A DNA stretch of 64,000 nucleotides from Aplysia californica (lineage: Eukaryota). Under the pieces are notes generated by a model. It was not told the DNA's origin. It ran no database searches and was given only the letters and a program-made list of their open reading frames with translations. Positions within the stretch are counted from its first letter, which is position 1. Each line of letters starts with the position of its first letter. A program made the position numbers and the translations under genes. The stretch lies in contig NW_004797486.1 in assembly GCF_000002075.1 (NCBI RefSeq), forward strand, positions 929,806 through 993,805, read 5' to 3'. Shown piece by piece: positions 7,270 to 28,742 of this stretch.

Positions 7270-8010
7270 CAAGATGCATACAAAAATCAAACAAAAGAGA
7301 CCTGGTTAAAAGAAGAAAGACGTGAGAAAAAGGAAAATCATTCCAGTGCGAACTCAAAAGATCTGCACAGAAACATTAAAAAGGTGTGCCATACAAGAAC
7401 ACGTGGATCAACAGGATGCCTCAAATCAAAGGATGGGAATATCATCATGGATAAGGATAAGATACTGGAACTTTGGACGGAATTCGGTGACCTGTACTGT
7501 CTCCGTGGTTTTATGCACCCCGCATAATTTGATCATTTTTTGCATACTTTCTGATTATTTTTCTTTATCATTCTGTGTTAAAATTAACAGAATCGTGTAA
7601 TTCCACATTTTTGGGCTCAGTTTGCATAATTTCAGAATTTTTGGGTGCATAAAACCGCGGGGACAACCTGTACAATGACAATAGCGAGAGGAACAAAGGA
7701 GAAAGGAAAATAACTACGAGGGCCCAGCAATCATGAAGGAAGAAATTATCAAAGCACTAATGAAGATGAAGACTGGGAAAGCTGCAGGACCTGACAACAT
7801 TACCACAGAAATGGTTAAAGCTTTAGATGACTTTGGAATAACCACACTGACAAAACTTCTCAACTTATACATTGTATGACACTGGACATATGCTATCAGA
7901 CTTGCCAAAATCTATTTTCATAGCTTTACCAAAGAAACCTAATGCAAATGAATGTGAGACTCATCGTACCATCAGCCTCAAGGGCCACGTAACACGGGTG
8001 CTAAGCATGG
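7270..8010 (+). mobile_element. RTE-clade LINE relic (RT N-terminal part), interrupted by a MITE
   Basis: GPAIMKEEIIKALMKMKTGKAAGPDNITTEMVKAL...KSIFIALPKKPNANECETHRTISL. Confidence 0.8.
7497..7666. mobile_element. MITE family M1 (~170-180 bp, 6-bp TSD)
   Basis: TIR ctgtc(c/t)ccgtggttttatgcaccc / gggtgcataaaaccgcggggaca; TSD cctgta at 7491-7496 and 7667-7672. Confidence 0.85.
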
Positions 8011-8019
8011 ACAAGCAAT

Positions 8020-8141
8020 CTGTCCCCGTGGTTTTATGCACCCTGCATAATTTAGCAAAAATTTGATCATTTCTTTACATAATTTCTGATTATTTTCCTT
8101 TATCATTCTTTGTTAAAATTAACAGAATCGCGTAATTTCAC
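8020..8141. mobile_element. MITE family M1, truncated at the LINE 5' end
   Basis: Left TIR and internal sequence match 7497 copy; stops where LINE A begins. Confidence 0.8.
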
Positions 8142-8867
8142 TACCCCCAGTGGGTCGGGGGGATATATATATAGACCCACTGCTCCGCCAGCAGGAGGTG
8201 CAACCCCTTGACTGGTGAGTTGTCGCCCATGGACATCTACGCTCAGGTGCACATGGGCGACACTTGTTTTGGTGTATCGTCTGTCTTCTATCATCATCTT
8301 TCTTCCTTCTTGACGGGGGACGGGGCTTTCGTCCTTCCCCGAGCTGACCGGGGAATAAAATACAAATAGTTCCCCCCCCCCCCCCCCGGGCTGGTGGGAT
8401 GCCACTCGTACGTCACTAGCTCTTTGACGTAGGGGTGACATCTTTTGTCCGCTCTTGTTATGTCTTCTGTCCATCTATCTATCTCTCCGATCTGTTGACC
8501 GAAGGTCCGGTCCAGCAAAAAAATAGACCCCAAATCCCCGCAACCCGAGGCACCCTGTTGACCGTGGGGTGTGACCCGAACGACCGGAGAAGGGGACCCT
8601 GGTGGCTGAGGTGTGGCTTCCCACACCAACACTCCACTTTGGCCCTGGATTCGGTCTAGACGGGCGGGTGCAGCGGCCTACAGCACTCAATTGGTTGCGA
8701 CCGGTTTTTGGCCAATCTTGGTTAGAAGGCAAGATTTCTTGCCGTCTGATTTGGGAGTATACCTCCAGGGTAACCCTGACACCAGCTATAGACTTCCGAG
8801 CGGTGTCCCCTTGTTGGACTCGGTGGCGGGTGGGGAGCCCTGGAGATGAATAAAAAACAAAATATAC

Positions 8868-10310
8868 ATGGATTCAATCAAAAACATTTCTCCCACCCCA
8901 GTTCCCAACAAGTCCCAGACAGGAGGAGCAGGTGCAACTCCTGGCCTGGGCAAGAGAAAGAAGGGCCTTTCGGGCGAAGATGCTCAGCATCTGGGACTTA
9001 CCAAAAAGAACATCATTGGGGTGGTCACCATTTCTGGTGATCTCCCCAAAAGATGAAAATCAAAACATTAATCTCACAACACTAAGCATTTTCAAGATAC
9101 ACAAGTCACTAAAAGATTTCGGTATACACAAACCAAAATACATTAAAAACCTAGGATCCACGGACCTCCTGATACAGGTCAGTTTCAGTATAGAATCAGG
9201 CAAACTGTTGGCCTGCACCTCGTTTGGTGGCATCCCTGTAAGTGTTCAGCCTCACAGACGTGTGAACGCATCCAAAGGTGTCATCAAAAGTCGAGAGCTC
9301 TGCGGCTGTACGGAAGAAGGGATTGTTCAGGAGGTCGATGGAATTGTCCATGCTCGTCGTATCAAAATACGGCGTGATGGCAAGGAAATTTGTACCAACA
9401 CGTGGATCCTTACCTTCAACACACCCACACCACCAACAAAATTAGACATCGCATACCCAGAACTCGAAGTAAGACCATATAATATACCGAAACCGATGCG
9501 CTGTTTCAACTGTCAATGCTTCAGACATACACAGCTGTGCTGTCATCGTGGTGCAGTGTGTCCTCGCTGCGGCAAGGAAGGACACTCTGGGGAGACCTGC
9601 TCTGTAGATCCCTGGTGTCCAAATTGTCGACAGGGGGGTCACACTGCATCTTCGACGGAGTGTCCGAAGTGGTGTCAGGAGAAAGCCATCCTCACACATA
9701 GGGCCCAGTACGGCGGAACGTTCACTCAAGCAAGAGCAACGCTGTACCCAAAAGGATCGACGCAAAAGAATACAGCAAAAACATATTCAGAAGTTCTGAA
9801 GACAGTCCCAGGGTCGGTACACCCAACCCGAAAGGTCCTTCAGACTGGAGATGGAGGAGGACAGGGAGTCCACTTCCTCCCCTCCTACCTCTCCCACCCT
9901 CCATCCGCCTTCTCCCCACACCCCCTCTTCATCACCACCCTCTCAGTCATCTTCTTCATCCTCACCCCCCTCATCATCCTCACCCTCATCATTCTCATCA
10001 TCACCCCCATCATCATCTTCACCCACAACATCCTCACCATCATCATCCTCACACAAATCACCACACCCTACACCCTCATTGCTTCAACCTCCATCCTATC
10101 ATCCTTCATTCAATAATGTCCATCCACCCACTCCCAGCACCCGCTCCCCCTCCTCTACCCGCATCCGGGACTCCGGTCCTCCTCCCCCTCCACACTCTCC
10201 TTAAAAAAAAAGCTGCAGTCCACCGTGACCGCAGCAAAACAAAACAAAGACAAAGGTCACCTACGACCCCCCCAAAAAATGTACCGAACCCGTGCCCTCA
10301 AAATAAATAA
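8868..10310 (+). pseudogene. LINE A ORF1 (nucleic-acid-binding, zinc knuckles), frameshifted
   Basis: Pieces in ORFs 8868-9056, 8932-10116, 9851-10204 and 10116-10310; homologous to LINE B ORF1 (SKGV(I/V)(K/R)S.EL.GC..E.IV). Confidence 0.8.
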
Positions 10311-11075
10311 AAATGGCAGTTCTTCAGTGGAACATTCGCGGTTTGCGTGCAAACCAGGCAGAACTCTTATCTTTTGACCTCACACACCCCAAATGTAATC
10401 TGTGTACCAGAAACTAAATTGCCAACACCCACATTCACATTAAACAACTATCAAACTTACAACCAAATATACACCGACAACCAAATCGCCTCTGGGGGCA
10501 ACTCCATTTTAATAAATAACCAAACACTACACAGACAAATACAACTAAACACAACACTTCAGGCAGTTGCGGTCAGGGTCACCCTACACCGTCCTATAAC
10601 TATCCGTTCAATATACATCCCTCCAAATTATCCTCTATCTTTAAGTAAGAGAACTAATAAACCTCAGAGACCAGCTCCCATAACCCTTCATCATGTTGGG
10701 AGATTTTAATGCCCATAGCCCTCTTTGGGGAAATGAACCAACTAACACTAAAGGTAAAATCATAGAAGATTTCTTAACAAAAACTAATACTAGTATTTTT
10801 AACGACAATTCCCCAACATTTCAAAATTCAAATAACCTAAACTTTTCATCCATAGATTTAACCCTATGTGATCCTGACCTAATTCCAGACTTTCAGTGGT
10901 CGGTCCTGGACTACCCACACGGATCGGACCACTTCCACATCAACCTAATTCCAGACTTTCCACACCGAACTCCTATCCCGGACCGTTTCAATCTTAAAAG
11001 AGCGGACTGGGATGGGTTTCACATGGAATGTCTGGAGAAACTCAATCCATCTCAAACACAAACTTTTGAACGATT

Positions 11076-11925
11076 CGTCGCCTATCACACGAAAGGGCGT
11101 ATTCCAGATTTTGGCAGTTTTGAGTTGTTACTTGTTACTACTAGTAGATAGCGCTGCCTCAGATCTATGTTCACACGAAACGGCGTATCCCTAGCTTTAA
11201 AATAGCAGCACTAGCAGTAAAAAATCAAAAAGCTAACACTCAGCGCCAACGAATCAGACGAAACGGCGTACACAGGCTTATGCCTTTTCGTGTGCAAAAA
11301 ATGATACAAAGTTTTATCAATTCTATTCGCACGAAAAGACGTATACCTTGGATACGCCCCTTCGTGTGAGCGACAGGAACACTTTTGTCTTTTTTTCTGG
11401 CATAGGCCAGGGCCGTATAACGTAATATCATAGTAAAACTAGATTCTAGGCCCTCCTCTAATGATGCAATAGGCCGGATACACAACACAGAGTACACGCC
11501 TTGTGCTGCAGCGAATCCTGCTTGTGCAAGAGTGAAAATGAGGCAGTCCTTATTGTGTTGCCTTATTATTATAGCCTACACTTGGTTACTGTTGCTTGCA
11601 GCTTACTGTCACACACAACGTGATCTGCTTGTCTGCTGATTATTGGAAACCATTAGAAAAAGCAAACTTGGGTTTGATCAAATTTAAATCAGATCTACTT
11701 TTTGTCCAACAATACATATGAATATTGCTCAGCTATATATATATATTTTTCCAATAGTGTATTATTCTACACTCATTAACTAGAAGGCAACGCTATCTAG
11801 ACACCCTCCCCCAGGGCAGTGCTACTGCAGTGATAAAAACATCAGGATTTAGACTTTGTTATATTGAGCCGAAGACAGGTCTACTAGGCGAGCCATGTAA
11901 GTTGCCCCTAAATGTTTATATTTTA

Positions 11926-11994
<69 letters not shown>

Positions 11995-13749
11995 ACACAA
12001 GAAACTCAAACCTAAATCGTTCTTTAGCTTGTACTCAGACTGTCGGGATTTTTCTTGTGTATTAGGCCCAGAATGGCAAGTTCGCATTTCAATGAAAGTG
12101 ACTCCGACTTTGTCAGATGACATTCCGTTAGCTAAACTTTGAAATGTAGGCTTACAATGAAAATTGAATTTTCTGATCAACACGAGGCTGAGAATGAAGA
12201 CACGTCTCTTGGCCTGGGTGACTTCGATGATTCGGACACGGATCATTTCCTAGAAGTTCCAGTATTTTGTAGTCAAAAGGAAAGACAGGGCAATCAACAA
12301 ACTCTGAATCCATATGAAACCCACTGTAGTAACGAACGGCTACCAGAATCATTTGAAGTTGAAGAGTAAGCCCGCCAGGCGTCGCCAAAGAAACGAAGAG
12401 AATCATCTCGAAGAACGATGCAAAAAAGAAAGCGACAATCTGGCGAAGAGTACATGAGCGCCGACACGAAAAAGGTTGTTCCAGCACGAATGATGGGAAA
12501 GGGCTGCGTTGGAATGGAATGTACGAGAGCTGGCCGTCAGTGTTCTGGAATCTCAGGAAAGGACAGGAGGGAGATATTTCAGGACTTTTTCAGGACAGTT
12601 TATAACCTGGCTGACCTGCAGAAGCAGCGAGAGTTCGTTGCGTAGCATATTGTGACGACTGAGCCCAAGCTCTTGACGCAGCAAAACGCATGCTTATTAC
12701 ATCACAGTCAATGGAAAGCGCTTGAAAGTGTGTAGGAACACATTCTTTGCAACCTTGGGTATTTCAGAGAAATGTGCCCGAGTTGTTTTGTCAAAGATTA
12801 CGGAGACCGGCATTGTGGAAGAAGACAAGCGAGGGGGCAGGCAATCGGAGCAGATGAAGACAAAAGGAGAACAAATTAGGGAGATGACCAGTCAACACAT
12901 AGACAGATTTCTACGCGTGGAATCGCACTACTGTAGGGCCTCTTCCAGCAAAGAGTATCTCGACCCAGACCTCACATTGTCCAAAATGTACGACATGTCC
13001 GTGAAAAAAATCCATGCAATGACATCCCAGGTTTTCACACATTTCAGACGAGTGTTCAAGACAAAAAAACCTGGCCTTTCATAGTCCTTAAAAAGGACTA
13101 ATGCTCACTCTGCAACTCTTAATTTATAATAGGCACGATGCAGAAAAACAAAAGGTGCGACAACTTAGGGAGGATTGCAAGAAGATGGTTCAAGCTGACC
13201 CCAGCATTCTGGCTGGGAACTTTGATCTCCAGCAGGTCATATACTTGCCAATTTCACATGAAGATGCTTTGTTCTANNNNNNNNNNNNNNNNNNNNNNNN
13301 NNNNNNNNNNNNNNNNNNNNNNNNNNNNNNNNNNNNNNNNNNNNNNNNNNNNNNNNNNNNNNNNNNNNNNNNNNNNNNNNNNNNNNNNNNNNNNNNNNNN
13401 NNNNNNTCTGAAGACTGAAATTAATAGTGTGGACACTCAAACACAGGGCGTGTACATGGGCGTATACACTGATTTTGGACAGGACAAAAAATTGAACAAT
13501 CACACGAAAGGGCGTATGCCAACAGATGGCACATTTTCGAAGTGAAATTATAAAAAACAGTGCAAAACTAATCTTGCTCGTTGTTTGATATCTTATCATG
13601 CCCACATTATCCAAATATCCCGATGCTAGGATGCAGTTTACTAAAATGACAAGGGAAAAGCATGAAGCAACCAAAGTCTGAAAATCTTTAAATCGCTCTC
13701 CTGAAAAAGTAAGAAAACAGGGATACGCCCTTTCATGTGACAGGCGACG
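11076..13749 (+). mobile_element. Sola1-type DNA transposon
   Basis: ~29-bp TIR cgtcgcct(a/g)tcaca(c/t)gaaagggcgtat; 4-bp TSD GATT (11072-11075, 13750-13753); transposase remnants VCRNTFFATLGIS, DKRGG, ESHYCRASSSKEYL, FDLQQV. Confidence 0.85.
11925..11998. repeat. (CA)n microsatellite
   Basis: Directly visible, inside the Sola1 element. Confidence 0.95.
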
Positions 13750-15724
13750 GATTTCATGAAACCCTTCTCGAAATCGTTCAAAAACACATACCAAAATTAT
13801 CCATCAAACCCCGAAAAAATAAATGTTGGTTCACTGAAGACTGCCAAAAAGCTGTTGCGGCCAAAAAAATCAGCTCTCAGGAAGTTCGTCAACTCTAAAA
13901 CAAACGAAGACCTCATTAATTTCAAAATTGCGCGAAGAATAATCAGAACGGCCAAAAAAATAAACATCTTTTCGAAATTATGTCTCTAAAATAAACAACA
14001 ACACACCAATGCACAAAGTCTGGAAGATGATAAAGAAATTAAAACGGACTAAAAAAGACACAATCAAACACATCCTAAAACCGAATAACTCCTTCGTAGA
14101 AACCGAAAAAACAGTAGCTGACTGTATAGCATCAACTCTTTCCGGAAATTCCTCTACCCACAATTACAACCCTGAATTCAAAAAAATAAAAATGTCTTCT
14201 GAAAAGACAACTGTTGATTTTACCTCTTCAAATGAAGAAAACTATAATTGCAGATTTTCTCTTAATGAATTAAAATGTAATATTGCAGAACTATCAAACA
14301 CAGCTCTAGGCCCTGATCAAATACACAACGAAATCATCAAACGTCTTCCAGACGAAACACTCCTATTACTCCTTGATATTTACAATGAACTCTGGCATTC
14401 TCAACAATTTCCGAACAGTTGGCGTTTTGCCACTATTATACCAATCCCAAAACCAGGAAAAGATCACTCTAATCCATCAAACTACCGTCCCATAGCCCTT
14501 ACAAACTGTTTCTGCAAACTTATGGAAAAACTTATTAACAAACGTCTAATGTGGTTTCTCGAAACCTCAAACTCCTTATCCAATTTCCGATGCGGTTTTC
14601 GCAAAAATCGCTCTACTATTGACCATCTCGTCCGACTTGAAACTTTCATTCGGGAAGCTTTCATTCGAAAAGAGCACCTTGTGGTTATTTTTTCGACTTA
14701 GAAAAAGCCTTCGACACCACATGGAAACATGGTATTTTACAATACCTGCGTGACTTGGGCTTACGCGGAAATCTTTTCAAGTAAAAGTAGGTTCAACCCT
14801 ATCAAATTTACACACCCAAGAAGAAGGTGTCCCCCAGGGAAGCATCTTATCGCCCATTCTTTTCGAAATCAAAATCAATTCCATCCCAAAAACCCTTCAA
14901 ACCAATATTGACTGCTCACTTTACGTTGACGACTTCCTGATCTGCTATAAATCCAAATCCAAAATGGTTCACATTGAACGCCAGCTTCAGCTGCAACTCC
15001 ATAAACTGGAAACTTGGGCAAACGGGCACGGGTTCAAATTTTCCACATTAAAAACAAACTTGGTACATTTTTGTTTGTCGCACAAGTGTGTGCGACAACC
15101 AGATTTATATTTGTTCGGAGAGAAAATTCCTGTTAAAAAACAAGCTCGTTTCCTGGGCGTAATCTTTGACAATAAACTTTCTTTCCTGCCTCACTTGAAA
15201 GACCTAAAGACGAGGTGTCAGAGTGCTCTCAACGCCTTAAAAGTATTATGCAATCCTGAATGGGGAGGAGATACTGAAATACTTCTTTAACTTTACCGTT
15301 CCCTTGTCCGTTCCAGATTGGACGATGCCAGTCCTGTTTACGGATCAGCCAGAAAGTCTTACCTCAAAATTTTAGACCCTGTTCAGAACCAAGGCCTTCG
15401 CCTTTCCCTAGGCGCTTTTCGTACTTCACCTGTAGAAAGTTTAGAGGCAGAAGCGCATGAACCATTTTTAGAACTTAGAAGGAAAAAACTCTTTGCAGTA
15501 CGCTTTGAAACTTAGCTCAGTCCCCCAAAACCCAGCCAACAAATGTGTCTTTGGCTTTCCCGAAGATCTAAAAACTCTAACCTCCTTAGGAAATAAAGTA
15601 AGCCCTTTCGGAATAAGAATCCAGAATCTTAAAGACATTGATTTTTCTGAAGACATAATCGAGCCCTTTGCCATGTCCAGCATACCTCCATAGCATTTAA
15701 CCAAACCTAACATAGATACTAGTG

Positions 15725-17563
15725 ACCCCCAGTGGGTCGGGGGGATATAAATAGACCCACTGCTTCGTCTGCAGAAGGTGCAACCCCTTCAAAGGCGGAG
15801 TGTCGCACAGGGACCCCAACCCTCTGGGATCCGTGAGCGACACTTACTTTGGTGTATCCTCCTCTTCTCCTTCCTTCTTTCTTTCTTCTTCTATCTTTCC
15901 TACCACCGCTGACCTCATGTGCAGCAAAACGAGAGGTCACCCATCCCACAGAGTGGGCGCCTTGTTGACCGTGAGGTGCGACCCGTGCGGAGGGAAACCG
16001 GGTACCTGGCGGTTGAGGTGAGATCAGTCCACGGACTGTCCCTCACCAACACACCTCTTTGGCCCAGGTTTTCCTCTTAGACGGGAGGGTGGCACGGCCC
16101 ATGCCACTCAATCGGTTGAGAGCTGAAACCCCATCAAGCCCTGGGTCAATCTTGACGGGAGGGTCTTGTACTTTCTCGTTGAGAGTATAGCTCCGAGGTA
16201 GCCCTGGCACAGGTCATCCGAGCAATGTGTCCCCTTGTTGGGCTCCGTGGCGGGCGGGGAGCCCCGGAGTCGAATCAAATACAAAACTCTCATGGTATCC
16301 AAATCAAAACAAGACCCTTCCCCAGCTCCCAACGTTAAAAAGTCTCGGCTCGCGGAAGCGGGTGCGGCCGCCGAGCCGAGCAAAAATTCAAAAACCAGTA
16401 AACGGACCTTTACCGTTGCTTCTTTCCTCCCTTCTCCCAGGGAGCTCCCGAAGCAGCCGTACGTGGCCATCTGCTGCAAAGAAGACGCACAGAAGAAGAT
16501 CACTGATCTAAATTTGTTCAAGACGGGAGATGCACTACGACAGGTTCTGGGATACATTCCTACGAATGTCCAGAAGCTGTCCTCTGGTGTACTCCTCGTC
16601 AAGTGCGCAACTGAAGACGAAGTGACCAAACTCCTGGATACCACGACCTTCGGCGGTATTCCATGTAGGTCCGAGCGCTACCAGAAATTCAACCGCTCGA
16701 AAGGCGTCGTCCGCAGCCATGAGCTGAAAGGCTGCTCCATGGAAGAAATTGTGGAGCACTGTGAGGGAGTGGTCGAAGCCCGCCGGATTACTCTTCGGCG
16801 GGGAGAGACTACTATTGAAACGAACACGATCGTCCTTACTTTCGAATCGTGTCGCCCTCCAGCCACCGTTCGGGCATCTTACTTGGTACTCGACGTACGA
16901 CCCTATGTGCCGAACCCTCTGCGCTGTTTCAAGTGTCAGAAGTTCGGCCATAGCCAGTCACGGTGCGTGCTCCAGTCTGTGGGAGAGCCACTGGGAAAAA
17001 CCAGAAAAATAATAAACTATATGAAATAAAACCCAAACTAGAACAGCGAAATCCTTCGGATCTCTCCAGAAGAGACGAAGTCATTTTTACTCGATTGCGC
17101 ATCGGACACACTGCCCTGACCCACAAATACCTCCTACAGGGAGATGAGAAGCCGTTCTGTGTCGGATGCGACACAGATTTTACCATTAGACACATTTTAA
17201 CAGAATGTCTAGACTTTGGAGAAATCCGAAGGAAATATTATAAATGCAAGAAATTGCAGGATATTTTTTCTTTCGTTGTTCCCAGCAGAATTTTAAATTT
17301 TATAAAGGCCATTGGCCATTATGGCGAGTTGTAGAGTGAATTTGATATTTTTAAAAATTTTTATTGTTACTTAAAAGTCGTTTTAGATCACAAATGTATT
17401 TACACCGAATTTGAATATTTTAACTTTTTAGCATTTTAAAGTAAATTAGTTAACCAGTCGTGAAGTGAACTTTCGCAGAGGTGAACAACTTGTGTTTCGC
17501 GCGCTCATATGACCTTAGCAGTTGCGAGCGCCGTAAAACCTTATACTATACATACATACATAC
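15725..17563 (+). mobile_element. I/Nimb-clade LINE 'B' 5' part (5'UTR + partial ORF1) fused to a LINE 3' end (ORF2 C-terminus, 3'UTR, (TACA)n tail)
   Basis: 5' end cccccagtgggtc like LINE A; ORF1 from ATG 16292 to first knuckle RCFKCQKFGHSQSRC; then jumps to RRDEVIFTRLRIGHT...CVGC...HILTEC*; terminal stem-loop and catacata repeats. Confidence 0.85.
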
Positions 17564-18297: not shown

Positions 18298-21200
18298 CGC
18301 CGCAAAATCAGCAGATATGGACGACGGAAAGCGGCCCTCTGATTCCAGATGCGAGATCACAACTGCTGTCTGTATACCCTTACCGGTTAGCTGGTCCTGC
18401 GTACGCAACACAGCACCCTGGAAATTTGAATCCTTACGCACAGGCTTTTTGGAATCATGCTGGCGTTAGACTCCCCCCAATGTTGGCTGGACACACCTTT
18501 AGTACCATGTCTGCACCTGGTCCGCAGTGGATTCCGGGAATGGCACCTTCGAGTAACTTTGGAATAGGAGCTCCACCAATACCATATTATTATGGGATGA
18601 ACCCGACAGTGACCTCAGCTCAAGACGGTCGCGAATTAGGTGAAATCGTTAGAACAGATAAAAGGCAGAACACTAATGACGATACGCGTATTGACTCTGA
18701 CCCTAATAAACAATTCTACGAGCCAATTTCTCCCCCTAAAACAAGCCACACAGAATATGAGGCTCGAGCTCGCACTCTCCAGTCATCTTTGAACTTTGAT
18801 CGGCAATCGATGCACAATATTTCAGCCTTTCATCATCAGTCTCAGCCTCAACCAACGTCCTCGTTTTCGACAGATTATCCATACCATCGTTCCAACCAGA
18901 ACGTATCGGGGCCTGTGTTTCCACAAGGAGTACAGACTGGCCAATACTCTCCAATTTGTCGCGGTTCAGGAGGTGTAAAAAAATCGGAAAACTTGCGGCG
19001 AAAAGCCCTCTTGAACTCAGCATCATCAGCTCTAACCGTTACTGATTCAACACAACCACCGAATGCTGCACTGGATCTAGCTACAAACGTAAACGACAAA
19101 GGGCCCGAGAACACCTCTTGCGTCTCCAAACCATCATCAGATAACCAAACGACGTCACTGGATCTGGTAAACCGACAGAACTCGGCAACTTCTTCAACCC
19201 ATACCAAAACGTCTCATCACAACCCTGGCGATCAAAGCAATCCTTTACCCCAAATTAGCCAAGAAGAATTAACAAATCGTTATTATCAAGCTATGTACTC
19301 AAACTTAACGCAGTATGACCATCAAGCAATCCTATCTGATACTTACCAGGCGCAATTATTACGGAGTATGCTTTTAAATTCCCCTAATGCGCAATTCGAT
19401 TATTCAAAACATGTTCTTCTGCAAAACCTTCCTCCTGGCGATAGAGTCAGCCATTCTGATACTACTATGCTCACCCAAAACAATTCAACAAAGGCATCAT
19501 CTCGAGCATCCAAGAGGACAGAATCTACTGTAAATGTCGGTTCTTCAACGTCTAGGCAACACGCACAAGTCACTCTAGGAACAGAAAACTCTGGACCATC
19601 TGAGGCAGTACAGTTTCCTCGGGATTTCAACTATTTTAATCGTTTACATCAGTCAGAACATTTGGCAGCGCCAGTGAGAGTTCCGGAACTGGCACCACCA
19701 CAACAAAATTCACCCCGCAAGGCAAAAAGGGGCGGTAAAAACAGTAGAGGTGGAAGAGGGAAAGGTTTGCAAAATGCTGGCACTGGAACCCCAATTGAAT
19801 TCCTACATCAAGAGGCCCCGGCAGAACCGACGATTTGCAGTTCTACTATGGTTAGCACTGGAGCTTGCACAGATGTTTACCATCCCACCCAATCGTCAGC
19901 CCATTTACAACAACCAAAGCAGCAGCAACAATCACTAGAGCAGCTCCAAAGACAGGCGCTTCAGCATCAGGACCAAGATCAACATCCACAGCAACAGCGT
20001 CAACATCTAGAACAGCAGCCACAACAACAACAGCGTCATCATCTAGAACAGCAACAACAACCACAACGACCAGGACAACTACAACAGAGTCCACAGCCAG
20101 AGCAGCAGCAGCAGCAACAACAACAACAAAAACAACAACAGCAGTGTAAACAACCAAATCAGCAACCACAGCGCCATCAGCCTGAACAGCAACAACAGCA
20201 GCATCAACAGCTAGAGCATGAGATACAACAGCACCAAAAGTCAGAACTACAGCTACAACAGCTAGAACAGGAACAACAACAGCGTCTGCAAGTCCGTGAA
20301 CAGCAACAGCACTGTCTAGAGCTAAGCCTACAACAGCACCAAGGACTAAAGCAGTACCAACAACTTAAACAGCTGGAACAGCAACCACAACAGCGCCAAC
20401 AGCCCGAGCAACAACAAGATCAGCAACAACAAGATCAGCAACAACAAGATCAGCACCAACATTCAGAGCAGGAACAACAACAGCACCAACAGCCAGAGAA
20501 GCAGCTACAACTTCAACATCGATCACCTCATAAAGCTCAACAGTCCGCGCAAATAGGAAACCACCAACAACATCAACAAGAGCAGTGGCAAAACCAGCAA
20601 GATTTGCCACAATCTGAACAGAGAAGAATAAAACCTCATGAACTGGAGCTGAAACGAAGAAAACAGTTACAAAACCAACAGATGCAACAGCAGCAGTGGT
20701 GGACACCGTCACGTCCTCCATACCTTATGAAAAATGAGAACCGTGCATCTGAAAATTCTCAACTTTTTGATTTGGGTAGAGGGTCGGCAAACGCGGGCCA
20801 ACTGGTTGGTAATTTGTCTTCCGAATCCCTGGAATCCGCAAAAATTAATTTATCCGATACTCTTAGAGACAAATCTCACTCTGTTACCCAAACGTCACAG
20901 AAACCCAGTTCCAGTTCTTTTCAGCACAACATTGTCGCTAAGGCTCATCGAAAAGATTTTCCTTCTCAGACTTCAACACATTCACAAGAAACCGCTGAAG
21001 GCTCAGAGGAAAATGTTTTTACTCATGAGAGAGTAAACAGCAACATTCCTAACTTGCAAGAAAATGGAAATGTGCCTAAGCAAAAACGTTCTCAGAATCA
21101 GACACTTCAGCATTCTCGATCTATTGTGAGCAGTAATGAACTCTTTAACACTGGTCAAAATATTATTACAAATAGTCCAACCACTGAGAAAAATGTCAAT

Positions 21201-24200
21201 GATGCTTCACTTTCTACTAACATTTCTTCGCCGCAACAAACAGCCCAATTTTTGTCGAGCAGTAATCTAAACCAAAAAGACAACTGCAGTGCTGATTCCA
21301 GGTCTACTTTGGATACTATATCAAACACCCGAATGGAATTGGTTGACGAAGTAGAAATCACAGGAAAACTAATTCCTGACAGCAAACAGACCGAAGGCTG
21401 GGGATATTCACAAACCTCTTCAAAAACTGCCACGACACACACTTTATCTGAAGCAGGGTTGGACGAGAAAAGTAATGAGGTTCATACTAGAACACCTTTC
21501 AATAACTCTAAAGAAGAATATGAAATTGGGTTATCGGTTCCCAAACATTATGGATGGTGGCAACACAAGAAAGACGACAAACATTCCAAAGGTTTTATGC
21601 ACCAGGAACATGAACAATATGTATATCCAAATATAGGTGGTCATAATAAGATCTCTAATGACGGTGCCTCTATCACTAACTTCGAAGAACATCGCTCAGA
21701 GATAAAAAAGAGTGAGCAAATATTCGATCAGCGAGCAGGGCATGGGGATGGTTGTACTAGTGCCCATTCTAGCGTTGCAGAAGTGGTGAAATCACCAGGA
21801 AATACATCCTTACTTTCATTTCCGAGTGAACGCTTCAACCATGTCTTCAACACAAGGAATGAGAAAAATCTTGCGAAAGCGCAGTTCAAAGAACAAAAAT
21901 CTTTGTATAACATACACGATTCGGGTACGAAGATGACACGGGTGCAACATGAAAGTGATGACCCTGGTTTGTATGCAAACCAAAAACTGTCATTCGGTGG
22001 TACGATTGGAGGGGAGTACGATCCAGTGTCATCAGAAGTGCTGTTGCCAAAATGTCGCCGCGGTACTGAAGAAGGTGATTCTTTCATCAATTCTCCCGTG
22101 AAACCGGAGCTCTCTTATCAAGATTCGAGTCAAAGACAAAAGGATGTCAGCTCGTCAGGACCACTTGAGCCTCGCTCTGAATCTTCAAATGTATCGACCT
22201 CTTCCCATTTACAAGACGGTTCTCAACCGTTTAAGGACAACTCAACAAGTAACAGAAACACACATCCTGTTCCTGAATATGCCCAGTCATTACTTGGCCT
22301 AAACAAATTAACTCGAAATTGGCTACCCAGTAATACCCAGGAAAGCGGACCTCAGAATGTCTTAACTGGCAAATATACTCACTCATTTGGAGAATCTGGT
22401 CCTTCCAAAATGGTTCCCCCAAAAAGCGATAATGGAAGGGGGAAAATTCTGGATTCCATTGTGAACTCTCTGCATTCTAACCAGAGACCGTCAAATGAAC
22501 AAACTGTAAACAGTCGTTTGTCGAATTCTTGTGACACTAGGACGGCTAAAAGAACTTGCACCGATGATCAAGACTTCAACAGAAAATGGCAAAGGGTTCC
22601 CCAAGCCCTTTCATACTTAGATACTCAAGTTGAAACGAATCCTGAAAATCTGAGTGGAAAACAAAGCTCTAAGCAAAGTGACCAAGCTGACAGTGAGCTA
22701 ACAACATCCTCGATACTTGCCACAATACCCCCAGGATTTTACGTGGATAATTACCAGTCTATTCGTGCCGCTGGCTCCGAATTCCCCAAAGGAGATGGAT
22801 CGAACAATACCCGGAAGGTAAGTGATCGTTTTAAGACTGGTGAGGACGATTGTTCTCTAATGAATTCACAAGGAGATCAGGGACACTTCTCATTGGGAAA
22901 AAGACCGGTTAGGAAGAATTCGTGTCGACAAATATCAGAACCATACAATGTTACAAATATAAATAAAATGAATAATCACCTGGTCTTACCTGATACTCGT
23001 AAAGAAGCACATACCATAAACAGGCAATCAAGGCATAAACAGAGCGGCTTTTATCTGGAGAAAATGGAAGGGCCCCAAACAAAGAAGGGCCGTGTGGACA
23101 AGACAATCGTAAAGCTTTTAAATATCGAAGAAGTCTTATATCAGGCGGAAATGGAATTTCTCCAAGTGAAGAAACGTCATTTGGAAGAGGTAATAGCTAA
23201 AATAAGGAATGCCAACAGAAGCTCAAGTCAGATAAAAGAGGAATTGCTTCGCCAGCACACACACCTGGACGAGAAAACAAGTCAGTTCTATCTAAAAAAT
23301 ACTGTGAAACGCACTGCTGCTCATACTGGTCAAGAGGCAAAGGAGTTTATAAACAGCGATGGCAGTAAGAAAGCGGGCCTCCAGGACCTAGAAAACTTGT
23401 TGCGTATTGAGGGAACACATCGTGAGGAGACTACATTTCAAAAAAATATAAAAGATAAACACTTTGATCCGTGCGCTCTCATTAGGCTCCAGTCAAAGAG
23501 GCTGCCGGTGCAGGGGCAAAGCTCAGTTCAAGCAACCGAAGTTTCTACAGCAGGAAAAAGACTGCTTGCACCTTCGATAAACGTACATACTTCACAAAAG
23601 GAAAGAGACCATGGTGAAACTGATTGCTTTGGCCACAAACGTGCAAAGACGGAGGACCAAGTCGATAAGCGAAACATAAAAGAAATTAATGAGGAGTTTG
23701 AACTTACAGGCTGGTCACCGAGGTCAACAGAGCTACAGTTGAGGAACAGGCAGTTGATCAGTTTCCAGGCACCGGCAGAGTTGGTAACTACTCATGGAGA
23801 ATATGTCCCTACTCTGAACGTTGTGGGGAACTCTGAACAAAACAGTGATAGGGCAAGACGGTCGGTTGAGCAAAATATAAGCACACGAAACATAAACAAG
23901 GATTCAGATTCGAACTCAAAGCTCGAGAAGGCGAAAAAGAATCGGAAACCAACCGACTTTTATCAGTGTGAAAGGATTCTCCAAAAAGCGAAGAAAACAA
24001 ATTCATCAGCCAAATCAGCCAAAAAAATTGCCGAGAATTCTTTAAAGTTGTCGAAGAGCATTGTTTCTAGGAAGAAAGACCCACATGGATACAGAAGGCT
24101 TGCTGGTACCGGTAACTTACATTCGACAAAAAATCCAAAGAATAGACCAGTGGGTTCCCCTATGAAGATATATGATATCAATCCAATACGGAGGACTTTC

Positions 24201-27200
24201 GGAGACGACTATTTTGACGACGTTCCTGTAGTAGGAAAATACTCATCTGGAAGTGGCAGAGATAAGTGTAGACGAACTGCGGAGGCAAGTGGCGAAAGAG
24301 TTGAGCTTTCTACAAAACTCTACCACCCATGTTCAAGTTTTCAAAAGGCATTACGCCAAACGCGGAAAAAAGACAACGCTGTTTCTTTGACACCAGTGGC
24401 ATCAAGGAAACACGACACTGTACCTTTGCTTCATAGGACCCCGTCTAAACCCAATCAATCATTGTCAAAAAGTTCGAAAAGAAATCGAATTGAATCAAAG
24501 TGTTCAAAGAATATAAACAAACGAATTGATGGATGTTCAAAGTTCAAAACTCGTCTTCCAAGTCTCACACACGGTTCTAGAATCAAAAACCTTGAAAACT
24601 ATGCCTATGCACGAGAATTAAGCTTGATTGAGAGGAAAGGTGATAAGATCAAGCCTGCCCTTTCCTCGAGTAAGCAGGTACAGCACCCGTCACCCAAACA
24701 TGTATGCGCTTCTGGAACTGAGAATACAAGTGAATTTGAAAGACACGTAAACAAAGTGAAGAGACGCTCTGTAACTTTGAAGCGAATTTGTTTCAAAACA
24801 AAAGACAAAACCACAACGTTTTCTGACACAACAGCACAGCGAGGACGACCCCACTTGGCAAAGTTCAAAACGAAAGACTATTCTCCAGCAGCGCTGCCTA
24901 ACACAACACCCATGCCTGTGTCCGCTGGAGTGAGCACAAGCACGACAATAGCCTCTACAGTTCTAAGTAGTAAAATGGCAAAATCAACGGACTCGACAAT
25001 GAAATCACTCACCTCGAAAAGTAAAGCAAAGCATCGACAGTGCTCAAAGTCAAGCCCAAAAGCTGATTCTCCAATAATACAAGTGCTTCCACGAAGGAGT
25101 GTTAACAAAGCAAGAACCTTTAGCGTTTCAAAAAGTCCCATGAAACGATCACCAATACCACAAAGCAGATCGAAACAATCCATAGCTAAAGACGGGTTTA
25201 TTTCTCCTCTATTAAGCCCACCGATACATGTGCCTCCCCTAGCGAATTCAAGCTTGGTCAGCTCCCTTCAATCCCCAAAGAAGACATCAGGAAACATTAC
25301 TATCAAATCTTGTGCCACTTATACTTCAACAAAGCACCTGTCAGTAACTTCCAAGGCAATGCGCCAGTCTACTCCAACTAATCGTCTGACAATTAAGTCA
25401 AAGGCAAAGCGCCACTCTCTTGAAACGATCAGGAGTGTATCTCCGCAGATGACGACAAACAGAACCGAGAGATATATTCCGAATAAAAAGAGAAAAGAGT
25501 CAGAAGTCATGAAACAAACGCTGGAAAAACGAGGAATATCAATACAATCGACAGAAAACGATGAGTTTTTGGCAATGCATTCTAGCATGGCCAAACCTGT
25601 GCTTACACAAGTGAATACACATATGACTAGGTGCCCTCATAATATTCCAAAGATAATGAGGACAAAATCAGGAGACATGCCAGTCGAGTGTAAACAGAAG
25701 CTAACCCGTATACATTTTCTAAAGAGACACACAACGGGGCATCATCCCAAAGCAAAACAACAGAGGGTAACCAGAACTGCACCGTACCAACTAGGTTCAA
25801 GCAGCATTAACTCTTCTCACACCCAAAAAGAAAAGACAACGAGACCAGTGTTTTCGACGAAAACTTCAAGAGAACAAAATATGAAGTCCTCAAAGAAGCC
25901 CATTGCTCTTGTAATGCAGGCGAGCCAGTCTAAACGTGGGTCTAAGGGAGAAGTCTTGATCAAATTTACTGAGCCACCCACAGTTCAAACGACATCGGTC
26001 CAGGCGGAAACGTCGCTTTCTGGAGATGACCTGCAAAGAAAACAAAACCAATCAAGAGAAAAGGAAGGAAGACATGATCTGCCAGCGATGAACTTAAGTG
26101 TTTCCAAGGCCGTGTTCTCATCAATGAGTAGAATCTCGCCGGCGACAAGTAATCGTTATGAGAAGACCAACTGGTTTGGAACAAAGCCAGTTGTCATCTC
26201 CAATGAGGCTGACGACAAGAATCTGAATAGAAAATCTACGCCATCTCTGCCTGGTTCACGGAGACAAAAGCCGCTTATAGAAACATTAATAACGAAATCT
26301 CCGTCCTGTTCTGAAAACTTGAGTAACAGTTCTGTATGCCAGGTTCGGCAAACAGCAGGGGCTCTTGGTGATAACAAAATAAGTAATCCAAAACATACAC
26401 CTTGTGCAGCAAGCACAAGTTACACTGCGCTTGTCCCACACAGTGACACATCATTGGGAAAGTCGAACCTCGAGTCTGCAAAGGGAATACACGTAAACCA
26501 AATCAAAGCAAATCTGTGTAGGAGCAAAACCCGTAACGTCAACACAACCCGAGGTAAAGACAGCGGAGGCCGAGTTTCAAAGTATTCCGGCCTGAAACCT
26601 TCGTCTGCACAAAGAACTAATCTTCAATTGTATAAAGATTCCATAAGCTTATTGCCAGATGCGTTAAATAGTCTGAAAAAGAATTCTACTGTGTCTAGCG
26701 GACTTTCTTCATCGACGACATCAGAAGCGTCATTGCAAACTATATCAAATAGAAACCGAAACAATAAAGTGAGCTCCCACAGCATTAGAAGGAATTTTTC
26801 ACCTGGACAAAAAGGTAGCGAATATCAATTTACAACTCCAGCTACAGGGAATATTGACGAAAGCACAGAATCAAACTATAATGTAAAGCAAGCGCTAACT
26901 CCAAATTCTACACGAGAGACTCTAATAATTACACCCATAAACAAGGTTCAAATGGCGAGTTCTGTATCAACAAAAAAACAAGATCCAAGAGAATTCTCTA
27001 AGTTTTATAATCAGAAACGTGTTGAAAAACGGCAAGGGTCTTTGCAAAAATCATCTGCAAATGAACTAAGCCAAATGCCACTTCAAAGTGCGATAACTGT
27101 TGCTGTAGAACCAACGTCCAGGCCATTAACTGATGGTTTGCCGTCGGTACCCTTCCAAACGACAGAAACCGTAGTGGTCACATCATCGCCTCTACAGTGG

Positions 27201-28742
27201 CCCCCGCCAGCACCAGACCCAGCACATATCGCTATCAAGTCAGCTGAGAGAGTCAATCCACAAACGCTCGGGCCGGCACGAGGAGTTTTCCCAAAGACTG
27301 CGCCAAAAGCCTCTAGAATAACACCATGTATATCGTCCTTGGCTACACCTCTCTTTATACAGCCCCGGGCCTCTAATCTTCCATGCATTTCTAAAACCCT
27401 TATGTCAGGGCCATATCCCACAAAACTCCAACACGTTCCCTTACCTCAAAACTCGCCACTATTCCAATCGTTCCCACAATGTGGCCACCCACAGCAAACC
27501 GCCTTGCCTTCCGAATCAAGAACCCAGTCCTCACTGCCACAGAACTACTTAACATGTCAACTGATGCCACAAAGCTCAGCGTTGTCGCTTTTCACGCCTG
27601 CGACACTGTCAACTCAGAATCGAATGGGAGCGTGGTCCGTAAAAAGAGGTCTTTTACCTGATCCTGTAACCCCCATACGGCAAACAGTGCCAGAACTGTC
27701 GTATCTGTCAGAACTACCACCATTGTGTACGCAATCCCAATCGTTGATGACGCATTTCCCGCCTACCTCGCAATCAGGATCATTCCATGCTCAGCTAGCG
27801 CCAGTTTTATCAAGTTCAACCGTGCCAACACAACAAGCACTGCCTACAGCATCATTCCCATCACCACCACCTCCACCACCATCATTACCACCACCACCAC
27901 CCCCACNNNNNNNNNNNNNNNNNNNNNNNNNNNNNNNNNNNNNNNNNNNNNNNNNNNNNNNNNNNNNNNNNNNNNNNNNNNNNNNNNNNNNNNNNNNNNN
28001 NNNNNNNNNNNNNNNNNNNNNNNNNNNNNNNNNNNNNNNNNNNNNNNNNNNNNNNNNNNNNNNNNNNNNNNNNNNNNNNNNNNNNNNNNNNNNNNNNNNN
28101 NNNNNNNNNNNNNNNNNNNNNNNNNNNNNNNNNNNNNNNNNNNNNNNNNNNNNNNNNNNNNNNNNNNNNNNNNNNNNNNNNNNNNNNNNNNNNNNNNNNN
28201 NNNNNNNNNNNNNNNNNNNNNNNNNNNNNNNNNNNNNNNNNNNNNNNNNNNNNNNNNNNNNNNNNNNNNNNNNNNNNNNNNNNNNNNNNNNNNNNNNNNN
28301 NNNNNNNNNNNNNNNNNNNNNNNNNNNNNNNNNNNNNNNNNNNNNGCCACCACCACCACCTCCACCCCCATCCCCATCATTACCACCACCTCCACTTCCC
28401 ACATCGCCGCCACCCCCACCACCTCCACCACCTCCATCTCTACCAGCCTCACCATCGTATTCACGGTCATCATCACCATCCCCACAACCATTCTCACCAC
28501 CACCACCGCTCGCACAACCATATTCACCATCATCACCACCGCTCGCACAACCATATTCACCATCATCACCACCGCTAGCACAACCATATTCACCCTCATC
28601 ACCACCGCTATCCTCACCTTTATCACCACCGCCGTCGCCACTATCACCGCCACCACTATCACCGCCACCACTATCACCGCCACCACGTAAGCGTTCACGG
28701 ACAGCTTATCACAAAGTCGTATATACAACTTTCCCCCGCTAA
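18298..28742 (+). CDS. Giant exon encoding ~3,480-aa predicted intrinsically disordered protein (poly-Q, S/T/N-rich, basic, poly-Pro)
   Basis: Uninterrupted frame >10 kb (one N-gap inside the poly-Pro tract); frame is open upstream of the listed TTG back to a polypyrimidine acceptor tttttcgtttcag at 18297; AATAAA at 29522 and 29541. No domain recognised. Confidence 0.85.

Follow-up and report, generated by a model that had tools for sequence, protein, structure and literature searches.

The window analyzed in this study is a 64,000-nucleotide (nt) stretch of the Aplysia californica genome (contig NW_004797486.1, positions 929,806 to 993,805 of the forward strand) that carries two long interspersed nuclear elements (LINEs) on the plus strand. 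LINE A starts at 8143 and its ORF1 AUG lies at 8868; LINE B starts at 15725, with its ORF1 AUG at 16292. Here we describe the approximately 320-nt leader that precedes ORF1 in each element (A, 8550–8870; B, 15957–16294). Comparative sequence analysis identifies the two leaders as one RNA family, in which the region before the ORF1 AUG of I/Nimb-like LINEs encodes a sense-strand RNA whose multi-domain fold is conserved. The most likely role of this RNA may be to place the ribosome on the ORF1 AUG independently of a cap.

LINE B is inserted at 15724/15725 in the region of LINE A that follows the reverse transcriptase (RT), the tail of ORF2, with the two elements head to tail. It stops abruptly near 16966, about 1.24 kb in, and the pair is thus a nested and truncated arrangement and not a tandem. 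Both window copies have decayed, A being frameshifted downstream of the ORF1 start and B truncated; they still represent the fold well. L061, an intact copy of the B family, encodes an ORF1 protein of approximately 470–490 amino acids with CCHC knuckles and an ORF2 protein of 1,226 amino acids with an APE endonuclease, an RT, and an RNase H. This domain content is as expected of I-like LINEs of the Nimb clade, and the Nimb label itself rests on a probable match, by description, of the 5′ head with those of Nimb-17_LMi and I-3_DR (PMC4758252). Both families were abundant in the Aplysia genome (927 Mb in 4,332 contigs searched), with hundreds of candidate copies, and about 45 copies showed a sharp 5′ boundary. 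In both A and B, the N-terminal part of ORF1 aligns with the ORF1 proteins of other species, starting at the AUG. Thus, both AUGs, which a preliminary description of this DNA had placed at 8868 and 16292, are genuine.

From 5′ to 3′, the leader is composed of a hairpin (D1), a long arm (D2) closed by helix P2, a second hairpin (D3), a conserved single strand, a variable region, the 3′ domain (D6), a YGAA motif, an A-rich spacer, and the AUG. Two covariance models were used, R1 for the 3′ domain including the AUG (87 aligned copies) and R2 for D1 to D3 (62 copies). The comparison of A with B alone gave 15 compensatory pairs. Standard pairs occupied 88.2% of the cells in the R1 alignment and 87.2% in that of R2, and both sides had changed in 16 of 23 pairs and in 38 of 46 pairs, respectively. 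The covariation scores were 0.471 (R1) and 0.432 (R2), compared with 0.173 and 0.171 after the letters of the 3′ sides were shuffled, and none of 500 shuffles reached the observed value in either model. Sliding the partners by one to three columns lowered the scores to 0.06–0.09 (R1) and 0.04–0.10 (R2). The heavily covarying helices were D1, D2, D3, and the closing helix of D6, designated as Pa.

As a control that keeps the phylogeny, mutual information with average product correction was calculated for every one of the 39,621 column pairs in the joined alignment, which held 46 sequences below 93% identity. Proposed base pairs made up the top 9 and 13 of the top 15 column pairs. G–U pairs outnumbered A–C mismatches by 268:94 and 301:121 in the two alignments (about 2.5–3 to 1), indicating that the sense RNA is the folded strand. 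The calculated folding energies of the leaders, −130 and −141 kcal/mol, correspond to very stable structures. Model R2 did not match 713 kb of unrelated viral contigs, and a search of viral contigs with the D6 pattern gave no match. A looser D3 pattern gave 81 matches there, all of which were dismissed as chance by model R2. A coding explanation was also rejected: the insertions and deletions between A and B are not multiples of three, the helices change pairwise without codon periodicity, and the ORF1 N-termini align from the AUG on, with only the N-terminal extension of P0008, produced by the gene caller, reading through the motif. The preliminary description had proposed a functional RNA structure from the leaders of A and B. 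Covariation in the 87 and 62 copies of these 5′ untranslated regions (UTRs) firmly supports this proposal, and much more strongly than a pair of copies could.

D1 (8550–8572) is formed by a stem (8550–8556/8566–8572) and a conserved loop, GUUGACCGU, at 8557–8565, whose consensus across copies is GUU(G/U)(A/G)CCGU. Its cells were paired in 91.9% of cases, five of the seven pairs change on both sides, and pair 9–41 was rank 2 of the 39,621 column pairs. P2 (CCCGU/ACGGG) and the irregular arm that it closes, D2, extend from 8575 to 8664. The internal loops of D2 are conserved in sequence (CCUGG, UGAGG, CAACAC, and CUUUGGCCC), and every pair covaries in the helices 8603–8606/8633–8636 and 8610–8616/8621–8627, which were 93% and 82% paired. 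The arm is missing from the Argiope copy L073 and is thus dispensable there. D3 (8666–8688) pairs GGGTGCA with (A)GCACTC; 95.7% of its cells were paired, six of seven pairs covary with up to six pair types, and its pairs held ranks 4, 5, 9, 12, and 13.

D3 is followed by the conserved single strand AAU(C/U)GGUUG (AAUCGG(U/C)U; 8689–8698), in which the CGGY at 8692–8695 is the candidate partner of ACCG (8561–8564) in the D1 loop. The two alignment column pairs concerned contained 36 G–C, 12 A–U, and 2 G–U pairs (columns 17–334) and 42 G–C, 6 G–U, and 2 A–U pairs (columns 20–331). The Aplysia clade combines ACCG with CGGU, and elsewhere GCCG is joined by CGGC; GCCA with UGGC was observed twice, together with several G–U intermediates. 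We regard this long-range pseudoknot as a candidate from sequence comparison, as its pair was rank 48 of 39,621, the independent events are few, and CpG decay could imitate part of the covariation. The preliminary description had instead used the same strand in a helix, GGUUG/CAAUC, which is not supported. In most families the U of this helix is a C, which would face an A, and that C changes with the D1 loop. The variable region D4/D5 (8699–8754) contains a CCAAUCU box and probably one or two hairpins; in L074 and in L072 from Haliotis, it is enlarged by insertions of up to approximately 300 nt.

The 3′ domain, D6 (8763–8845), is preceded by an invariant GAGUAUA at 8755–8761, directly 5′ of Pa. 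GAGUAUA lies opposite the invariant YGAA on the 3′ side, and the two may possibly form a non-canonical extension of Pa in the model. Pa (8763–8770/8838–8845) is 8–10 bp long across families; 94.7% of its cells were paired, all eight pairs covary, each showing four to six pair types, and Pa pairs held ranks 1, 3, 8, 11, 15, and 18. A small internal loop, UAA opposite AG, separates Pa from Pb (8774–8777/8832–8835, 4–5 bp), which leads into a four-way junction almost without linker nucleotides. The arms of the junction are Pc (8778–8807), which is variable, Pd (8808–8817), read as CC-CUUGUU-GG (loop CCUUGU in A), and Pe (8818–8831), read as ACUC-NGUGGN-GGGU. The apex of Pc carries a conserved GCUGGGCUCUGCCCC motif in many metagenome families, such as L084, L103, and L125; Aplysia-type elements lack it and carry AGCUCUGG...CCGAGC instead.

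The same leader in LINE B (15957–16294) comprises D1 (15957–15979), P2/D2 (15982–16085), D3 (16087–16109), the pseudoknot partner (16113–16116), D6 (16191–16269), the linker (16270–16291), and the AUG (16292–16294). In its closing helix, the window copy of B has a private G to A change (CTCCGAGG), and the other B copies read CTCCGGGG. The leaders are present where the preliminary description had located them (A, 8550–8845; B, 15957–16269). The two hairpins and the long arm that it had drawn are D1, D3, and D2, and they covary in 62–87 aligned copies from many families, as does, across families, the helix that it had drawn around the final domain (8763–8770/8838–8845 and 16191–16198/16262–16269). 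Its pseudoknot between GAGU and ACUC/GCUC in the final domain is not supported, as ACUC/GCUC pairs locally with GGGU/GGGC and the A–U pair becomes G–C or G–U in several lineages. GAGUAUA is invariant and hence uninformative for any pairing of GAGU.

The linker of LINE A (8846–8867) begins with AUGAA, an N-Y-G-A-A motif, continues as an A-rich and G-poor spacer, and ends at the ORF1 start codon (8868–8870). A spacer of exactly 22 nt had been noted previously. This length is correct for both window copies, whereas across families the spacer varies from 18 to 24 nt in 75 copies. Among the 76 copies counted, the length was 10 nt in one, 18 in one, 19 in 16, 20 in 21, 21 in 18, 22 in 12, 23 in four, and 24 in three, so that 67 of the 75 fall within 19–22 nt; because R1 includes the AUG, the alignment favors an AUG at that place. 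The range was 19–24 nt among 36 distinct linkers of unrelated sequence. GAA was found at positions 3–5 after Pa in 35 or 36 of these 36 linkers, and the sequence beyond it was not conserved, with 40% A and 10% G compared with 15% A and 33% G in the structured body. The AUGs at the end of the spacer open ORF1 wherever the copy is intact. AUGs upstream of them, already noted in both leaders, number five in the whole UTR of A and three in that of B. At least one was present in 54 of 55 leaders; the mean number was 4.9, where composition predicts 5.6, which indicates no depletion, and copies with an intact ORF1 have 1–11.

We collected relatives of the leader through ORF1 homologues on contigs of other organisms and by scanning JGI metagenomes for the motif of the last domain. 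More than 35 diverged LINE families, with fewer than 40% of 8-mers in common across this region, carried the leader. It precedes ORF1 in Aplysia, Haliotis rufescens, Nymphon striatum, Argiope bruennichi, and Ixodes scapularis; by sequence, it is therefore conserved in molluscs, spiders, ticks, and sea spiders, with ORF1 identity to the Aplysia elements dropping to about 28–45%. D6 was found on approximately 75 metagenome contigs, and most of those reaching far enough upstream also carry D1 to D3. Effectively, only two lineages occur within Aplysia, and a covariance-model search for more diverged families returned copies of A and B only in the portion of its genome that was covered. Neither model matched the ORF1-homologue locus of the wasp Ampulex.

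The leader was also found on L069 (GCA_022360515.1), filed as a metagenome-assembled genome of Candidatus Omnitrophica. This contig carries a complete eukaryotic LINE 5′UTR, ORF1, and ORF2 (APE, RT, and RNase H) and appears to be animal DNA that was binned with a bacterial genome; in the gene call, its ORF1 starts at an internal GTG, approximately 75 nt past the real AUG. In an annotated Argiope "gene" (L073:4299–4377), a second R2-model match (E-value 6e-8) lies approximately 3 kb downstream of the first and is probably a separate nested or tandem element. ORF1 and ORF2 overlap by 4 nt of the ATGA type in L066 (1922–1925) and L070 (2187–2190) and by 26 nt in L067 (2125–2150), suggesting termination-reinitiation or frameshifting for ORF2.

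The 5′ terminus of LINE A (8143–8181) is a candidate H-type pseudoknot head. Stem 1 pairs C5 (8144–8148) with G6 (8157–8162), stem 2 pairs AGTGGGTC (8149–8156) with GACCCACT (8174–8181), and an AU-rich, TATA-like loop lies at 8163–8173. The corresponding terminus and head of LINE B span 15725–15761. The head of the Aplysia families reads ACCCCC-AGUGGGUC-GGGGGG-AUAUAAAUA-GACCCACU, and stem 2 covaries in at least six families, with the variants AGCCTACC/GGTAGGCT, GCGGGTT/AGCCCGC, TTCCTACC/GGTAGGAG, and GTCTGTA/TACAGAT. Matched by description, this head is probably the "LP head" published for Nimb elements (PMC4758252). Full-length copies retain 200–560 nt upstream of the structured domain. A fold like that of the hepatitis delta virus (HDV) ribozyme was considered for the Aplysia head (8143–8181) and rejected: the topology fails with only 8 nt between the C-run and the G-run, the AU-rich loop contains no P3, L3, or P1.1, and the head has no Rfam match. 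A second conserved hairpin, GUGUCGC...GCGACAC, follows the head at 8213–8262 and 15793–15846, with an inner part that differs between A and B; families with short UTRs have a UAAGAGG loop on the same GUCG/CGAC stem. The hairpin is followed by a CT-rich tract, and A also has an insertion of approximately 155 nt holding a C16 run.

Sister families that share the domain begin with HDV-like ribozyme candidates (L072, L104, L107, L091, and L119). An HDV-like ribozyme at these ends would have a P1 of 7 bp starting from G·U, a P3 with a C-rich L3, a GG for P1.1, the C of J4/2, a P2, and an element 5′ end at G1. The candidates lie at L072:817–873, L104:740–861, L107:1794–1915, L091:1069–1189, L119:456, and L099:723. 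In Haliotis (L072), three Rfam HDV-type models aligned over their full length (RF02682, 27.5 bits; RF00094, 21.7 bits; RF01787, 16.5 bits), covering P1 with G1·U, P3, L3 UCCUCGU, GGG, and J4/2 GCUAAU. L104, L107, and L091 gave RF02682 scores of 30–32 bits with complete alignments of P1, P3, L3, and J4/2. The RF02682 scores, 27.5–31.8 bits, compare with a gathering score of 44, and all HDV-type scores are below the Rfam gathering thresholds. Our own HDV-like descriptor matched the same places and added L119. In four independent insertions with unrelated flanks, the first homologous position is exactly G1 of the predicted P1, which is the cleavage site of HDV-type ribozymes (PMC4908430). Cleavage by these candidates at G1 would leave an uncapped RNA, suggesting that ORF1 of the ribozyme-bearing families is translated without a cap, and the domain adjoining the AUG is the only conserved candidate for cap-free translation in those families. 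In Haliotis, the pseudoknot head directly follows the ribozyme candidate.

We infer that an internal ribosome entry site (IRES)-like, cap-independent placement of the ribosome on the ORF1 AUG is the most likely role of the leader, with a probability of roughly 0.55. The leader RNA would recruit or position the small ribosomal subunit on this AUG without scanning from a cap, with D6 and the spacer together serving as a ruler for the placement of the AUG in the mRNA channel. In this way, LINE RNAs could be translated even when their 5′ ends are uncapped, after cutting by a ribozyme, or buried in structure. Indirect support comes from a spacer that is constrained in length and unconstrained in sequence, from the invariant YGAA, from the very stable fold, from upstream AUGs that are not depleted, and from sister families whose 5′ end coincides exactly with the cleavage site of candidate HDV-like ribozymes, which would leave the RNA uncapped. 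More tentatively, the leader could represent a new class of retrotransposon IRES, for which we see a little less than an even chance: a six-domain RNA of approximately 300 nt, present at least in molluscs and chelicerates, that would place the 40S subunit on ORF1 approximately 20 nt past a four-way junction and would work together with exchangeable 5′ modules (a terminal pseudoknot or an HDV-like ribozyme) that make or protect an uncapped end.

Several observations weigh against cap-independent initiation. The context of the ORF1 AUG is good for scanning (25 of 36 have A at −3, and 22 of 36 have G at +4), and decay after insertion can add upstream AUGs to genomic copies. The Aplysia families have no ribozyme and only the 5′ pseudoknot head, which is probably the LP head regarded as a promoter; their transcripts could thus carry a cap. 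The z-scores of single-sequence folding are modest (−2.2). Moreover, a structured 5′UTR beside the first ORF equally fits a packaging or protein-binding signal. The leader could accordingly be a protein-binding element for ribonucleoprotein assembly, recognized by the element's own ORF1 protein with its three CCHC knuckles or by the ORF2 protein, and serving cis-preferential packaging or integration control. In several of its loops and internal loops the sequence does not vary (GUUUGCCGU, CCUGG/UGAGG, CAACAC/CUUUGG, CCUUGUU, and NGUGGN), which is typical of protein contacts, and the domain co-evolves with ORF1 and ORF2 across phyla. ORF1 carries CCHC zinc knuckles, and retroviral CCHC knuckles bind exposed G-rich loops. 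The R2 5′ pseudoknot RNA and the retroviral packaging signal beside gag would be precedents by analogy. Protein binding alone leaves the distance of 19–24 nt between helix and AUG and the unstructured linker unexplained, and we consider it the main alternative, serious although unlikely, for the leader as a whole; it is compatible with a role in translation, and both could hold.

Other post-transcriptional roles, namely a translational repressor or switch, a localization or export signal, or a stability or anti-silencing element, appear improbable. A very stable structure beside the AUG would inhibit scanning, and RNAs of I-group LINEs, such as the Drosophila I factor, carry structured localization signals; however, the spacing constraint, the unstructured linker, and the association with putatively ribozyme-cut 5′ ends favor start-site selection, and it would be strange if elements in several phyla had all preserved a pure repressor. 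The size, the multi-junction architecture, and the invariant junction nucleotides also resemble those of large ribozymes, and LINE 5′UTRs are known to house ribozymes (PMC4908430, PMC3774820). It is nevertheless very improbable that the 300-nt domain is itself catalytic, as a new self-cleaving, processing, or lariat-capping-like ribozyme, since no Rfam ribozyme matched within it even when E-values up to 10 were allowed, the HDV-like candidates are located outside it, at the very 5′ end, and the 200–560 nt upstream are kept in full-length copies, so that the template RNA was not cut there. Least probable of all is an internal promoter or enhancer acting as DNA with incidental RNA pairing, which is strongly disfavored by the covariation. 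This LINE group does use internal promoters and has a TATA-like motif in the far 5′ head, but the structured domain lies 200–560 nt downstream of the element start, its helices vary freely yet stay complementary, unlike the sites of DNA-binding proteins, and its many G–U pairs would be A–C mismatches on the other strand.

Downstream of the two LINEs, the window contains an open frame of 3,438 codons (18426–28742). It is rich in Q, S, and P and low in complexity, with CAA/CAG and CCA repeats, one run of N, and no Pfam domain, and is presumably a single giant exon of a host gene unrelated to the LINEs.

The translation of LINE RNAs is poorly understood, in particular that of uncapped RNAs cut from co-transcripts by ribozymes. 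Claims of cellular IRESs are often disputed for want of a conserved structure; here, the fold is strongly supported by comparative evidence and stands in a fixed geometry to the AUG. Dozens of natural variants and two alternative 5′ modules provide a clean test system for cap-independent initiation in invertebrates. The two covariance models are ready for annotating full-length I/Nimb-like LINEs, and the family is a candidate for a new Rfam entry. If the IRES-like role is correct, this would be the first widely conserved, covariation-supported LINE IRES and a candidate source or sink of structured IRES modules exchanged with invertebrate RNA viruses.

We compared the leader with known RNA families and systems. 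In Rfam 15, the whole window gave no match at gathering score, the region 8000–9000 gave five chance-level matches to unrelated families at E-values up to 10, and ten related loci gave nothing inside the domain. ARAGORN, applied to look for a tRNA-like cloverleaf, detected no tRNA genes in 8000–16500. The full-text literature searched on 5′UTR structures of LINEs and Nimb elements, retrotransposon IRESs, and conserved motifs contained no description of the domain, and searches by motif words returned only chance matches to primers, such as a Senecavirus 3D primer. The structured RNA family in the 5′UTR of I/Nimb-like LINEs is genuine, widely conserved, and apparently undescribed.

The preliminary description had compared the leader with type IV IRESs of the hepatitis C virus (HCV) and pestiviruses. 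Both are multi-domain RNAs with a four-way junction, a fixed short distance to the AUG, and an unstructured start region. Beyond these features the analogy fails. The Rfam IRES models of HCV, pestiviruses, and related picornaviruses do not match the LINE leader, the domain order and conserved loops are unrelated, and the host is a retrotransposon and not a virus. The HCV/pestivirus type, which binds the 40S subunit and eIF3 directly with little need of other factors, has a pseudoknot approximately 11–13 nt upstream of the AUG, whereas none is supported at this place in the LINE leader, and the spacer is approximately 20 nt (19–24) in the leader and approximately 12 in that type. The intergenic IRES of dicistroviruses uses three pseudoknots, tRNA-mRNA mimicry, and a non-AUG start directly after pseudoknot PKI; the LINE leader has no Rfam match to it and a conserved AUG approximately 20 nt after the structure. 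The leader is thus outside the HCV-like and dicistrovirus classes, whose testable defining features it lacks. In picornavirus type 1 and 2 IRESs, the 3′ border is a Yn-Xm-AUG motif with a spacer of approximately 18–20 nt. The LINE leader similarly has its AUG approximately 20 nt past the point where the structured part ends; its border is N-Y-G-A-A after a helix, without a pyrimidine tract, and the structures are dissimilar.

Among retrotransposons, cap-free translation has been proposed for LINEs whose 5′UTRs start with HDV-like ribozymes (R2, RTE, Baggins, and L1Tc; PMC4908430, PMC3774820, PMC3383444). These are likewise non-long terminal repeat retrotransposons, and sister families of the Aplysia elements start at G1 of an HDV-like candidate; the 300-nt domain is a separate, much larger module without similarity to the ribozyme. 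According to a citation in PMC4908430, HDV-like ribozymes themselves have been linked to retrotransposon translation (Ruminski et al. 2011), and the ribozyme and the domain may divide this task between them. The R2 5′ RNA pseudoknot binds the R2 protein, and its role in protein binding and integration is established (PMC12222951, PMC11331408). It resembles the leader as a conserved, structured, and pseudoknotted RNA in the 5′ part of a LINE RNA, and differs from it in belonging to another clade with a single ORF, in having no sequence or model similarity, and in having no reported spacing relation to a start codon.

The LP head, the conserved first 70 bp or so of Nimb-clade LINE 5′UTRs, has also been captured by short interspersed nuclear elements of molluscs and was treated as a putative promoter by Matetovici et al. 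(PMC4758252). The elements and hosts are of the same kind, and a CT-rich tract likewise follows the head. As the two Nimb UTRs compared in that study showed no homology in the remaining approximately 300 bp (PMC4758252), the ORF1-proximal domain is absent from its description; the conserved leader corrects the impression that these UTRs share only the first 70 bp. Mouse LINE-1 offers a precedent for internal ribosome entry in a LINE mRNA, with IRESs upstream of ORF1 and ORF2 (PMC3592465). Those IRESs are A-rich, poorly structured, and lineage-specific, whereas the leader described here is a covarying fold conserved across phyla.

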